From: Octopus sinensis
Taxonomy: Eukaryota
NCBI RefSeq assembly: GCF_006345805.1
Contig: NC_043003.1
Coordinates: 77,376,001 to 77,440,000, forward strand
Length of the DNA: 64,000 bases
Direction of reading: 5' to 3'
The notes under the pieces are model-generated. The model had not been told where the DNA came from, did not search any database, and saw only the letters and a list, made by a program, of their open reading frames with translations. This document shows, in pieces, positions 7,601 through 32,071 of this stretch. Each line of letters starts with the position of its first letter. Within the stretch, counting starts at the first letter, position 1. A program made the translations under genes and the position numbers.

Positions 7601-8690
7601 TAATAATATTAGATGTTTTAAAGTTTGCTTAACTTTAACAAAAAGACATTTAAGGTAAGCAAAATGTAGTAATTAGATAATAGAATGGTCAATTGTGATC
7701 AGGAAACAGATAATGGAAACTCTTCACTTTTAGTTGCCTCTTGTAACATGCAGGAATATGGTGTGCTTATTCTAAAATTGGGAAACGGAGTGCAGATATG
7801 GGTGGGGGAGAGACTTGAAACAAGTTGATTACAACTAACAGAAGAATCTTGAGATCACACAATAGTAAACCACACTAAAATGAGCATGAATTCTATAGAG
7901 ATCCAATCTTCCAGTTTCCTTCTTAATATCTAATAACATTCTACATTCTTATCAGAAAGCGACAGAAAAGACTAGTTGTGGATTTCACTGAATTATTAAG
8001 CCAAAGATGAAAAAGTAAAACACATTTTATAATCTCTTTCAGAGAAGGTTTTTTTTCGTATATCAGTTTGATTAAAGAATATGTCAACTAGGTTTATATT
8101 TTAATTTTTCAAAAATTTTTAAAAAGAGGGGGAGCTAGTATGTTAAAAGTAACTGGTACTAGTAAAAATTTATACAAATCTGATACTTTTTTTTCATTTC
8201 AATAAAGTATTTAGTATATACAGTTACCAAAAAAAAATTACATATATATGAGAGCGAGAGAGAGAGAAAGAGGGGGTTGAAAATGTTTGAAGGATATTAA
8301 ATTTAAGAGAGAAGTGATCAGTCCCAATTATGTGCAGTGACCTCAGCAGCTTATAGTCCAATAATACAAAATATGTGGTTAAGAAATCACAGCTATAAAC
8401 AAAGATTTCAAAGAGAGAATTCCAGAACAATCAAAACAAATAGAATTGTTTGAGAGATTGCAGCAGCAACAACAATGTAAGATAGTGAAAATCTAAGAAA
8501 TCTCTCCAAACAAAACAATTCCAAAATAAACTTGAAAAGAAACTGAGTAGATGGTTTCAGTGAGTAATCTGAAATGAAAGTAAGAGTATCCTGGCACCTG
8601 AAAGTAGTATCAAGCATCACAATGAAGCTGTAATATAAGGCATCCGCCATTCATTCCAGCTGCTCTCATTCATTCGTATGGTATACTCAC

Positions 8691-8861
8691 AACGCCCACA
8701 ACAATGTCCTTGACCAACACTATAATTACGGCCCTTCCACTCAAGCTTGAAACTGACCACTTGCCTGTGTCTTGGATGAGCACATTAACAAGGTTTTGTG
8801 GTTTGGTCAGTTTATCGACAATATGAAATTCAGCGGTAGGTTTTCAACCTCTTCCCCTAAG
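8691..8861 (-). other. Candidate PTC-containing cassette exon in U2AF2 intron 7
   Basis: Acceptor attcttttcttgtttcttcccccttttgtccctag, donor GTT|GTGAGT. Phase-0 reading CTT AGG GGA AGA GGT TGA. Confidence 0.45.
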
Positions 8862-10705
8862 CTAGGGACAAAAGGGGGAAGAAACAAGAAAAGAATAATG
8901 AGTTGATGTATCAAAAACATACATATAACATGACGCAATTAACTTAATAAAGAAGCTTTTTTTTTTTTTAATTTAGAACTATAATATCTGAAATAGATTT
9001 ATCAGCATTACCATAGTACAGAAATATTGGTTACTTAAAATCTAAATAAAATTATAATTATTTCACTACACTAATTCTCACCTTTTATCTTTTTTTTTCT
9101 TTTTTAATTTACAGATTGGAAATTTTTTAATAATCAAGTAATAATAGTTTTTAAAAAAGATTTAGAGAGAGTTTCCTGTAAAAAGAAAGCTGAAATGGAA
9201 TTGGCGAGAAATGCTGAAAGAGAACAGTCTGAAACAGAGAGCTTGCCATCTGAAATAGGAGAGACCTGGCTATATTTTCTACCAAATCAGCAAGTTTCTA
9301 TGAGTCGCATTCCAATCACTTCAGGGAAAAAAATGTAAATAAAAAAAGAAAATAACATTTCTCTCTCTCTCCTTCCATGAGGAAAGCCTAATAGGGGTAA
9401 AAATCTTATGTAAAAAGATTTCATTTCAAGTAATGCTTGTTGAAATATTGAAACCTAATTTTTATTTGATCTTTCAATGATCAATAAGGCATCATTTCTT
9501 AAAAACATCAAATATTTTACCCCACAACTAAATAAATTCTACTTTTACTTCAACTACAGCTGGTAGTGGAGATCAAAGTACTAACAGAATAACCACAGTC
9601 TAGACAGTTGCTAGACACAGAGATATATCCCACAAATACAAGTAGGATTATGTTCTCCAAATTCTGCAGCATTAACACTACCTAAAAGCATTCCGCTTTC
9701 AGTTAAAAACTAGAAACTGTTTCCCAAGGCATAAACTTACATAGAAACTGTATCTCTAAAGAGTATGCCAGTTTGCTGAAGTGCATGACAATGTAGTGTT
9801 GGGGAAAGCTACAGCACTAACTGTCACAGTACCTACACAGCTAGATCAGAGTTCAATGGAATGAGCAAAAGTATTTTTTTTAGCACGAAACTGAGCCACA
9901 GTTAATACCCACTCCATGATAAGCAAGATCTAGCTGTAATATGTGTGATTAATCTTTATAGATAGAAGACTAGTACAAAAGTAACTATACATAATATTTT
10001 CCTCAGCAATGGAATAAGCCTTCTTTTGAAGCTTTATTTACTACTCAGATTATCAATATTATTTCATGTTTTACCTAACACTTTCATTAAAAAGAAAAGG
10101 AAAAAAACTCATTAAGAGAATCCTAAAATCCTGCCTTAAAACAAGACAATGAACAAGAAATACCATTTGATTATCAAAAATGAAATGAAGATGAGCTAAA
10201 CAACAATTTCAATAGACACGAGATTACATCTGCCAAGACCTATTGGTCTATGTATGCAAACACACACATTCATACACCCCCATAAATACATACATATGTA
10301 TATTTATACATATATATTATATATATATATATGTGCACTCACACCAAAGTTCTGTTCGCTAAAAGAGAATGTATTTTGCTCAGAAACAAACAAACTATTC
10401 AATACAGTTTTTAGCCTAATGAAACAAGAAAAATAACTGACACAATATGAATATGTGTAATTCGAGAAGCAGTTGCTCATTAGGTTACCCACATAAGTCC
10501 TGCTTGAAAAGAGCTAAACAGAGGACAGGGGGAATCAAAACAATCATTTACTGAAGAGACTCCCAAATGTTTTTCTCTTTCACACACTTTCTTCTAACCA
10601 AAGCAAACAAAACACTTCCAACTGTCCCACAGACTTAAGATGTGCAATTCATTCATTAATCCATTTTAAATGAGATTAAAACCTTCATTATAATCATAAG
10701 TTTTA

Positions 10706-10783
10706 CTGAAAAATGAGAAAATGGAAAAAAAAAAAAAAAAGAAAAAAAAGGCAAGTCAGAAAGTTTGTGAACAGCTGACTCAC
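10706..10783 (-). other. Candidate 78-nt mini-intron inside U2AF2 intron 7
   Basis: GTGAGT...TTCTGAC (branch-like)...about 40-nt pyrimidine tract...TTTTCAG. Confidence 0.5.
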
Positions 10784-29472: not shown

Positions 29473-29855
29473 TCTTTATATATAAAAGTGAGGTTGTGTG
29501 CTGTCCGTCTCCTACGATTTAGATTCCTAACTACTCCCACATTTTGCGATGCAGTTTAACCAAAACCGGGTATCTTATAGTCGTGATTCATATCGAGCCC
29601 TTCTGGGTATTAGTGCGCGTCTACGATTTAAAAAAAAATTTACCATCAATTTTTCCCATTTTTAATGCATTTTTGGCATATATAAGGGAAGTAACTCTCT
29701 AAAAATTTATTAAATCTCTGAACGTAAAAAGCTACAGTAACACCCTCCCCTTTGTGGTTAGCCATATTGAGATGGCTATTATACTTTACATCTCTAAAAA
29801 TGCTTATATAGTTATTTCCCTTACAAACCCGAGCAACGCCGGGCGATACTGCTAG
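29473..29855 (+). mobile_element. Non-autonomous Helitron
   Basis: A|TCTTTATATATAAAAG ... cccgagcaacgccgggcgatactgCTAG|T. Confidence 0.88.
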
Positions 29856-30277
29856 TGATATATAAATATACAAACACAAACACAGACAAACGAGCCTCTT
29901 CTAGTTTACCTCAGCAAAATTTCATTCACATGCAGATGATACTAGAAGTGTGCATACAGAAACCCAGAACCTAAGTGAACTTAGCCATATGGTCGTGCCA
30001 ATGCATATGTTTATACACACATGGGCAATCAGCTTAAGCATTCCCAAGAGCCACAAATTAGCTAGGACTAAATAAAAAAACATTTCTTCAGCTATATCTG
30101 CTTTATTGACTTTTGCCCCAACCTCATTTTGTAATTTCTCAGTTTTTGACCCTATCGAAAGTTTTGTCAGATTCATGTTAATTTTGACGAATCATAATTT
30201 CATGTGATTGAACAAATCTGGATTATTTTTCAAAAGAAAGTCGGAAAAAAACAGAAAAAAAACGGAGAGAGACTCAC

Positions 30278-30509
30278 ATCCAACAAAGGCCCCAACCCTC
30301 CCGAATACTACTAATCTGCAATGTTTAAACATGCATCTGATGAAATTGCATGATTTGGGGCGCACAAGATAATTGCAATAAAATCGTTTTGCACCATTTC
30401 TGATCTTTCCTATTCAGCCGCCCTGTTTCATCTATTACTCCCTTAGGGAACGAACAGTGGGACGAAGACTAATCTTACATAGTTGCCCCTATAAATTCCT
30501 TTCAGGACG
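30278..30509 (-). other. Candidate PTC-containing cassette exon in U2AF2 intron 1
   Basis: Branch-like CCTTGAC, acceptor ttctttccaccccttttgtctctgctctcttgtcag, donor GAT|GTGAGT. Reading from exon 1 is G|CG TCC TGA. Confidence 0.45.
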
Positions 30510-32071
30510 CTGACAAGAGAGCAGAGACAAAAGGGGTGGAAAGAAGTCTTTAGTTACGTCAAGGACATAACGATCCTCACAAGTGTTGGTGCAGCAATAA
30601 ATTGCACCCGGTACTCCCTGTAAAGTGGTTGGTAATAATGAAGGTCGTTTAGCCATAGAAACCAAGTTAAAAATTCAAACTTCGATTGAAGATCCATCAT
30701 GGAAAACAAACACCAATAAAGCGACGGAAATATTCACATTTGAAATTCATTTGCTATAATACACACACACATCCGAAATTTATATATATATATTATATTC
30801 ACATATCCACATTTGAAATTCATTACGTTAAATATATATGTATATATACGTTTGAAATTCGTGATTTGCAAACATAAAGAGCAGCAATATTAACAAATAA
30901 AAATTGAAAATTCACGAGTTTCGCGTTACCGCTTTTCGATATAATTAGACATGGCGAAAATTGGTATAACGCGAAAGCCTAAATGACGACGTTGTAAATT
31001 TAGCAGTTTTAATGGGAATTTATGTTACACGTTTTTCAAATCTAAAATAAAAAGATACAGAAAGAAACGTTATAAAAAAAAAATGAATATTAACAGACAC
31101 TTATGTGCATGCATGCACACATATATATAATATATATATATATATATATATATATATAATATATATATATATATATATATATATATATATATAAGAGAGA
31201 GAGAGAGAGAGAGAGTGTGTGTGTGTGAGAGAGAGAGAGAGATGGAGAGCAAGAGAGTTTTGAAAACCTTATGACGTCGTCTCTTCACACCGACATCTAC
31301 GGCGTAAACGAATATCGAAGGGATGCCTATATAATTAGATTTTAAGGTTTTATGGTCGGATTAAAAAAAAAAATACATGAAACATTTCTAAAATTTCGCT
31401 CTGAATTAAAATTTTCTTTATTTTAAACATAAAAGTTCTGAACACATTGCGCGCGTGCACGTGTGTGTGCATGAATGTGTATGTATGTGTGTGAGTATAT
31501 ATATATATATACACACACACACATATATATATATATAGTTCTCTATATATATATATTCCAGAAATGAGCTAGCGCAACTGCTGTTACCTGGTCGGTGGGA
31601 TTGATAAATATAGTATCTAAATTTGCCCTCAAAACTATTGGATAAAGGCAGATTGGATTGGATAATGCCGTCCTATAGACAATATGTCTGAATGAAAGGC
31701 GGCAGAATGATTTATAAGTGGAACATAATTCTTCCGCTCAGTTAGGTCTGACTTGGAAATTAGTTTAAAAACCATTCAAGACATGAATTTTCCAAGACAT
31801 TCTATTCATTTTTCTATATTTCTATGTGCAATATGTCCGTCTGTCTCTCTCATATATATATAAAGATTTAAATAGACACATACACACTCTATAGGAGAGC
31901 AATCACACACGCATGCATGCACAAACACATATATATTATATATATATATATATATACATACATGCACATATATACACACACACAACGCACATCACATAAA
32001 GACTTGAAGAGAGATAAAGACCACGCACGCACACACAAGCACAAATGTGTACATGGCCAAACAACGATTAC

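Follow-up and report, generated by a model that had tools for sequence, protein, structure and literature searches.

Does U2AF2, the gene for the large subunit of the splicing factor U2AF, limit its own output by unproductive splicing, and where in the gene would such a switch lie? The question is raised by a 64,000-nucleotide stretch of Octopus sinensis DNA (contig NC_043003.1, positions 77,376,001–77,440,000; hereafter the window), whose minus strand carries the 5′ part of U2AF2, exons 1–7. A sequence-only reading had proposed a multi-layered circuit of stop-containing exons and decoy acceptors in three introns, between positions 8560 and 30560, which fall midway along introns 7 and 1, respectively. 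Its identification of the gene as that for U2AF65 was sound: exons 1–7, placed by tblastn with a human U2AF65 query and by manual reading of the splice junctions, encode a 280-residue product that is 98% identical to the U2AF 50 kDa-like protein of Argonauta hians, has only U2AF large subunits as its top matches, and shows the RS domain, the U2AF35-binding W motif, the RRM1–RRM2 order and the orthologue-level identity of that family. The circuit itself contracts to a single intron. Judged from genome comparison, intron 7 contains a conserved, spliceable, stop-bearing cassette exon (a ‘poison exon’) between exons 7 and 8; unproductive splicing at this intron is well supported, and autoregulation by U2AF65 is plausible.

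The comparison used the genomic U2AF2 locus of Argonauta, which aligns with the window at all seven exons with 85–93% identity. Within intron 7, a block at 9390–8257 (minus strand) is ∼82% identical between the two octopods over 1.1 kb, while the sequence immediately outside it aligns at only about 45–55%. In the core of this block (8945–8545), 391 of 404 positions are identical (96.8%), as compared with 67.5% of third codon positions in the coding sequence and 92.5% of exon 7 overall; the core thus evolves far more slowly than synonymous sites. The block is non-coding, its open reading frames (ORFs) being short and different in the two octopods and its alignment containing 1-nt indels, and a protein search with an 80-residue ORF inside it found no further cephalopod contigs. 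These data support very strong purifying selection on the stop-containing cassette exon and on the arrays of acceptor-like motifs that accompany it.

The poison exon itself (8861–8765, minus strand) is 97 nt long and identical to that of Argonauta at 96 positions. It is preceded by a 35-nt C/U-rich polypyrimidine tract ending in a CCCTAG acceptor (8896–8862), which scores 14.6 in a simple consensus matrix and so equals or beats five of the six real internal acceptors of the gene, and it is followed by a donor of the GC type, CAG/GCAAGT (GCAAGT at 8764–8759; here and below a slash marks the splice junction). Inclusion would join it to exon 7 (12099–12020, minus strand), which encodes the start of RRM2 and ends in phase 0 after ...LPNYLNEDQ. 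Read on from there, the exon begins CTT AGG GGA AGA GGT TGA, or LRGRG*, with the TGA as codon 6 at 8846–8844, and its length (1 mod 3) would shift the frame as well. The stop lies 79 nt before the 3′ end of the exon, and its distance from the next junction thus exceeds 50 nt; five further coding exons are expected from the gene of Argonauta, in which exon 8 is a further 8.7 kb away. A second donor in the conserved core, GTT/GTGAGT (8690–8685, minus strand), would yield a 171-nt version of the exon. The motif GAG-GTTGAAAA at 8862–8840 resembles the authentic start of exon 8 in relatives, CAG/GTGAAAGAA, and may copy or mimic that junction.

A protein search revealed homologues that end directly after ...NYLNEDQ: with LRERG* in a marine metatranscriptome, LRYRG* in the termite Cryptotermes and RG* in the psyllid Diaphorina. 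The metatranscriptome contig (L007) represents a complete U2AF2 mRNA of a heterobranch gastropod, whose product matches snail and sea-slug proteins with up to 97% identity; in it, an insert of 76 nt stands precisely between NEDQ and VKELL, at the exon 7/8 boundary, and all remaining junctions are spliced. The insert starts CTTAGGGAACGAGGTTGAAAG and finishes GGACACAG, where the octopod exon starts CTTAGGGGAAGAGGTTGAAAA and finishes AAGACACAG. An orthologous exon has therefore been spliced into mRNA.

Genomic counterparts lie in the same phase-0 intron of the land snail Candidula (L025 19482–19573, 92 nt, ccctag/CTTAGGGAACGAGG...CCCAG/GCAAGT), the termite Zootermopsis (L022 11867–11963, 97 nt, tcgtag/CTAAGGTATCGCGGGTAG...CACAAG/GCAAGT) and the hemichordate Saccoglossus (L023 14885–14978, 94 nt, ccctag/CAAAGGGGTCCGGGATAA...ATCAG/GCAAGT). 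Each has its stop at codon 6, a length that is not a multiple of three and a GC donor; the termite exon encodes the same LRYRG* tail as the annotated truncated protein of Cryptotermes, and that of Saccoglossus encodes QRGPG*. When the five genomes are aligned, GGCAAGT and TAG/C..AGG are invariant, and the end of the exon in L007 (...GACACAG joined to GTGAAAG) coincides with the position of the GC donor in the snail. From base frequencies, we estimate the chance of finding in the 2.5-kb intron of Saccoglossus the AGGCAAGT octamer with a matching acceptor 92–97 nt upstream at ∼4 in a million. The corresponding motif in Diaphorina is TTTTTCAG/AGGGGTTGAAG, with several TTTTCAG nearby; in this locus (L021), ...CAG followed by GTTGAA occurs twice, at 8717 and 8789. 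The exon is thus recognizable in three phyla or classes beyond the octopods, and the module at 9390–8257 is probably a strongly selected and very old unproductive-splicing element of U2AF2. Its recurrence in snails, termites and an acorn worm points to a very old switch by which U2AF2 probably restrains its own output. The flanks of the block gave no significant match in the other phyla compared.

Could the block be conserved for a reason other than splicing, as an enhancer, as an antisense or nested non-coding RNA, or as the source of a functional truncated isoform? An Rfam scan of 8000–33000 found no RNA family, which leaves an undescribed RNA possible, and the LR-x-RG tail is alike in molluscs and termites. 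The invariant positions are, however, splice signals in the sense orientation (YAG/C..AGG and AG/GCAAGT), the enrichment of acceptor-like motifs described below is strand-specific, and the exon occurs in a spliced mRNA. Conservation also continues beyond the stop codon, and indels between the octopods interrupt the ORFs of the block, which are short. We consider such explanations very improbable.

Two further sets of U2AF2 proteins depart from the ordinary product. One consists of insect-like truncated sequences from Logan and ENA (P0077, P0083, P0116 and P0128, one cluster having 46 members) that end after ...DSATGLSKG with short unrelated tails; they may represent another unproductive event in arthropods, in a part of the gene outside the window. 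In the other, 5-residue inserts (FFTSQ, VGQLN) stand in frame between NEDQ and VKELL in the stick insect Bacillus rossius (P0053–P0068) and the scorpion Centruroides (P0110), which points to alternative acceptors shortly before exon 8.

The second element of the module lies upstream of the poison exon. Array 1 (9255–9176, minus strand; 86.8% identical to Argonauta) comprises TTTCAG at 9255–9250, 9234–9229, 9219–9214 and 9195–9190 and TTACAG at 9181–9176. Five motifs in 80 nt make it the densest such cluster that the 64 kb of the window contain on either strand; TTTCAG alone occurs four times in 61 nt, against a background of 0.86 per kb. UUUCAG is the minimal binding site of the U2AF65/U2AF35 heterodimer. 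The array stands 320–394 nt upstream of the exon, and similar arrays were found at similar distances elsewhere. Measured from the exon start, TT[TA]CAG motifs run from −394 to −320 in the window and from −410 to −337 in Argonauta, with six copies from −481 to −217 in the termite and eight from −584 to −245 in Saccoglossus; when 150-nt windows are compared along the whole of each of the four loci (16–64 kb), the one densest in TT[TA]CAG starts at −386 to −416. The snail has about ten copies, from −799 to −389, within a 52-nt tandem repeat (L025 18680–19100) whose unit is TTTCAG/CTTCTGTTCA (...ggggttttaTTTCAGcttctgttcaacatgaacttcggctttgtcaaaatct...), so an array can be rebuilt by local amplification. 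Counts on the sense strand were 5–9, against 0–1 on the antisense strand, and the observed count was reached by no more than 1 in 1000 dinucleotide-preserving shuffles. A sub-motif is shared as well (CAGCATTTCTCGCCAATTCCATTTCAG in the octopods, CAGCGCATCTTTCTCGCCCCACTTGTTTTCAG in Saccoglossus).

Other parts of the block are conserved between the two octopods only, among the phyla compared. These are array 2 (8633–8569, minus strand; TTACAG at 8633–8628, TTTCAG at 8603–8598 and 8574–8569), which lies downstream of the poison exon and is absent from the other phyla; a strong donor-like site downstream of array 1, AAG/GTGAGA (9084–9076, minus strand, with its GT at 9081–9080); and the purine-rich sequence downstream of the poison exon, where ∼260 nt are nearly invariant and include GAATGAATG twice. 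A further TTTCAG stands at 8993–8988 (minus strand). The donor at 9081 could serve with array 1 to define stop-containing exons of 94–168 nt (for example 9175–9082), or it could be an intronic U1 site.

That donor bears on how unproductive transcripts might be disposed of. By analogy with uaf-1 of Caenorhabditis elegans, transcripts carrying the acceptor repeats, either spliced from an array acceptor to the 9081 donor or retaining the intron, might be held in the nucleus by bound U2AF and escape nonsense-mediated decay (NMD). The octopod exons that would result contain up to four UUUCAG repeats, and there is a nematode precedent, reported by MacMorris et al. (1999, PNAS 96:3813). Neither the termite nor the snail array is followed by a comparable donor, however, and the sole transcript with an insert, L007, includes the downstream exon rather than the array. 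We regard retention of this kind as a lesser rival and as improbable.

A third element is a hairpin, predicted to form between the C-rich portion of the pyrimidine tract and the opening 15 nt of the poison exon, which are G-rich; the paired segments are UUUCUUCCCC and GGGGAAGAGG in the octopods, UUCCCUA and UAGGGAA in the snail, and CCUUUUG and CAAAGGG in Saccoglossus. As compared with shuffled sequences, the stability of the hairpin gives z = −2.0 to −2.9 in four of the five species, and such pairing may account for the strong constraint on the start of the exon. Folding around the donor was significant in no species, and a 10-bp stem bracketing the donor (AAACUGACCA with UGGUCAGUUU) was set aside, as it is present in octopods only.

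Together, these elements suggest how the module might act. Inclusion of the poison exon would leave a truncated protein with RRM1 but only the first strand of RRM2, and the resulting mRNA would be removed by NMD or kept in the nucleus, leaving less U2AF65. The weak GC donor and the predicted hairpin over the pyrimidine tract may hold the exon near the threshold of use. The row of UUUCAG motifs, which lack long pyrimidine tracts, would be filled mainly when U2AF is in excess; once filled, it could bring 3′ splice-site machinery to the intron and shift splicing towards the array acceptors or the poison exon. Use of either would give negative feedback on U2AF65, and this is the least secure step of the scheme. 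The case for binding of U2AF65 to its own pre-mRNA consists of motif data, namely the sense-strand UUUCAG array and the long pyrimidine tract, so that the role of U2AF65 itself as sensor and driver of the switch is put forward from motif identity and precedent. In C. elegans, UAF-1/UAF-2 bind UUUUCAGR (PMC2762039). Taken as a whole, an ancient unproductive-splicing module in intron 7 with negative feedback by U2AF65 is the explanation that we favour, and we hold it to be rather probable.

A serious rival accepts the poison exon as genuine and conserved but places it under other factors, such as SR proteins, hnRNPs, PTB-like proteins or developmental and stress signals; in that case, the motifs of the TTTCAG array would be real alternative acceptors or sites for another pyrimidine-binding protein. 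The purine-rich repeats in the ∼260 nearly invariant nucleotides downstream of the exon are unlike U2AF sites, and the weak GC donor points to control that depends on U1 or on enhancers. Cross-regulation is also common among splicing factors, U2AF2 itself acting on the poison exons of RBM39 and FUS (PMC13075997). Against this, the downstream purine-rich part is unconserved beyond octopods, and the only feature shared across phyla besides the exon is an array of minimal 3′ splice-site motifs, the very target that U2AF recognizes. We think control by other factors unlikely, though clearly less so than nuclear retention.

Several observations weigh against feedback by U2AF65 through this module and should be set beside the evidence for it. 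The interval in which the arrays were tested (−600 to −200) was picked after the octopod data had been viewed, so that the termite, the snail and the hemichordate are the independent checks. The predicted hairpin fails in the termite (z = −0.3), and folding of the whole core is unremarkable (z = −0.96). With a pyrimidine tract as strong as that of the poison exon, there is no clear reason for the concentration of U2AF to be limiting in preference to U1 binding or other factors. Nor is the module universal, as the single teleost copy examined (Umbra, L024) has an intron 7 of 285 nt without the poison exon. Finally, the cephalopod contigs L002–L006 are ordinary mRNA, none with the poison exon.

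Logan contigs L002 and L003 had appeared to be poison-exon transcripts, each with two ORFs, and were rejected when the second ORF proved to be an open alternative frame of the RS domain in a 5′-truncated normal mRNA. A scan of metagenome contigs for the exact pattern of the exon start returned 13 matches, about the number expected by chance, none of which encodes U2AF2. For vertebrates, a protein search with the human segment plus tail gave mostly exon 7 fragments read through into the intron and yielded no evidence of the exon.

How does this arrangement compare with known systems? The sequence-only reading had likened its candidates to uaf-1 of C. elegans, and for intron 7, with its stop-containing cassette exon and acceptor-like arrays, the analogy is apt. 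Exon 3 of uaf-1 (Zorio et al. 1997, Mol Cell Biol 17:946; MacMorris et al. 1999) is reportedly a stop-containing alternative exon full of 3′ splice-site repeats, and the repeats within it are said to cause nuclear retention rather than NMD. Both genes encode the large subunit of U2AF, and both link a stop-containing alternative exon to many copies of a U2AF-type 3′ splice site. The nematode repeats lie inside the exon, however, whereas the octopod array is intronic, ∼320–400 nt upstream, and would become exonic only if an array acceptor were joined with the candidate donor at 9081; the 97-nt poison exon contains no match to UUUUCAG/R, and the nematode exon interrupts the gene further 5′. It is possible, though we would lean against it, that a single module, consisting of a UUUCAG array followed ∼400 nt later by a hairpin-guarded GC-donor stop exon of ∼95 nt, has been kept since before the protostome–deuterostome split as an ancestral self-limiting device of U2AF, from which the repeat exon of uaf-1 was derived.

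Poison exons with conserved flanks are known in splicing-factor genes including the SRSF family, TRA2B, SMNDC1, SF3B3 and RBM39 (PMC11791180, PMC11357089, PMC11162794, PMC10477243). With the SR-type exons the U2AF2 exon shares a premature-stop cassette in a splicing-factor gene, conservation of exon and intronic flanks above that of coding sequence, and presumed negative feedback; it differs in the gene concerned, in the GC-type donor kept across phyla, in the decoy-acceptor array upstream and in its distribution, being conserved in molluscs, insects and a hemichordate and absent from the teleost copy. Human U2AF2 has an annotated poison exon that was listed as a low-confidence candidate for autoregulation, its position in the gene not being stated (Pervouchine et al. 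2019, PMC6547761); the likeness is that of a poison exon in the orthologous gene, proposed to be autoregulatory. In Sf3b3, an intronic RNA structure has been shown experimentally to conceal the branch site of a poison exon (PMC11162794). The hairpin predicted here would likewise cover part of the 3′ splice site of a conserved poison exon, in this case the pyrimidine tract rather than the branch site, and by prediction only. The U2AF2 intron-7 exon therefore belongs to the poison-exon class, and its architecture echoes the nematode case without matching it. In the literature searched, including a 2025 review of feedback in splicing factors (PMC12179342), we found no description of the intron-7 exon, its GC donor, the upstream array or the conservation across phyla.

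What, then, of the other introns? To screen candidates, every AG and GT on both strands was scored with simple consensus matrices. At thresholds taken from the real exons, the introns of the gene contain 54 pseudo-exons on the sense strand, 52 of which have an in-frame stop. A stop is therefore the default outcome and uninformative, and the remark in the sequence-only reading that most of its configurations would introduce one is true without being discriminating. Strict thresholds leave three non-coding candidates with GT donors in the gene, 9175–9082 in intron 7 and 30509–30278 and 28827–28662 in intron 1, while the two pseudo-exons of intron 2 are weak. Strong pairs occur twice in the 9.2 kb of intron 1 and twice in the 31.8 kb of non-genic upstream flank, a difference that is not significant in a Poisson test. 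A sensitive search of introns 1, 2, 5 and 6 against their Argonauta counterparts found nothing real that is conserved.

The pseudo-exons of introns 1 and 2 (for example 30509–30278, 28827–28662 and 17822–17637) are thus very probably chance occurrences with no regulatory role: their density is that of the non-genic flank, they lack conservation even in the sensitive intron-against-intron search, and nearly all random pseudo-exons contain stops. On the other side, an element specific to one lineage would lack conservation anyway, and at loose thresholds the sense pseudo-exons of intron 1 exceed the antisense ones, 17 to 2. The claim of unusually strong splice-site configurations in three introns consequently holds for intron 7, which contains every unusual one, and fails for introns 1 and 2, where they occur at background frequency; the same division is seen in the expected conservation of orthologous introns, found against Argonauta in two blocks of intron 7 and nowhere in introns 1 or 2. 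With the candidates of these introns looking like ordinary chance pseudo-exons, the idea of a multi-layered circuit over three introns is not supported.

The second of the two blocks (11598–11296, minus strand) is weaker, at 70.7% identity, and like the flanks of the main block it has no significant match in the other phyla compared. It contains a conserved acceptor, TTCTTACAG/ (exon start 11524), and a donor, TGGCAG/GTATTC (exon end 11426), and may represent either a T-rich exon of 99 nt or a regulatory element.

The remaining exons, all on the minus strand and all with GT–AG borders and pyrimidine tracts, as is exon 7, are exon 1 (32129–32072, with the ATG at 32129), exon 2 (22894–22711, encoding the RS domain), exon 3 (17520–17399), exon 4 (16763–16624), exon 5 (15952–15836) and exon 6 (13616–13478). 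No match to exon 8 onward, that is to the remainder of RRM2 and the C-terminal domain, was found in 1–12019, so that intron 7 exceeds 12 kb and leaves the window at its left end. No other intron of U2AF2 is as long in Argonauta, where intron 7 measures 11.4 kb, or in the termite, where it measures 7.2 kb.

Beyond the gene, the window contains remnants of transposons and several repeats. Upstream of the U2AF2 start, two adjacent ORFs (34389–35239, minus strand) represent a broken transposase of the Tc1/mariner type (Pfam HTH_Tnp_Tc3_2 and DDE_3), and an 86-residue ORF at 52296–52556 (plus strand; ...DNARPHTAKIT...PYSPDLAPSDYHLF...) resembles the C-terminal part of a mariner transposase, with no Pfam match at E ≤ 0.001. 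An interspersed repeat of ∼150 nt has at least six copies in the window (2781–2935, 4471–4620, 48165–48315, 52722–52865, 61983–62143 and 63485–63653) and more than 15, at 70–90% identity, in the Argonauta locus. Members of a second family, of ∼100 nt, lie at 1630–1727, 16037–16138 (within intron 4), 22986–23076 (just upstream of exon 2), 48672–48779, 54641–54739, 58386–58462 and 61235–61326, and also in Argonauta (L001 near 4046–4110 and 21030–21130). Long microsatellites of the TA/CA type (1920–2790, 3860–4460, 58290–58810 and 61180–61750) translate into YIYI/CVCV runs and are the source of most of the long mechanical ORFs. ARAGORN found no tRNA-like gene in the window.

At nearly every intron, choice of the 3′ splice site begins with U2AF65, whose level therefore affects the whole transcriptome; to our knowledge, little has been described outside C. 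elegans of how this level is controlled. One practical consequence of the present findings is that gene models ending in ...NEDQ-LRxRG* (termite) or ...NEDQ-RG* (psyllid) are probably to be read as the unproductive isoform rather than as a protein in its own right. More broadly, a module that can be recognized by sequence in molluscs, insects and a hemichordate provides a concrete, mutable handle on U2AF homeostasis, as well as a natural test of the idea that weak decoy sites, set in arrays, can serve as concentration sensors. Few known poison exons would be as deeply conserved as that of U2AF2.

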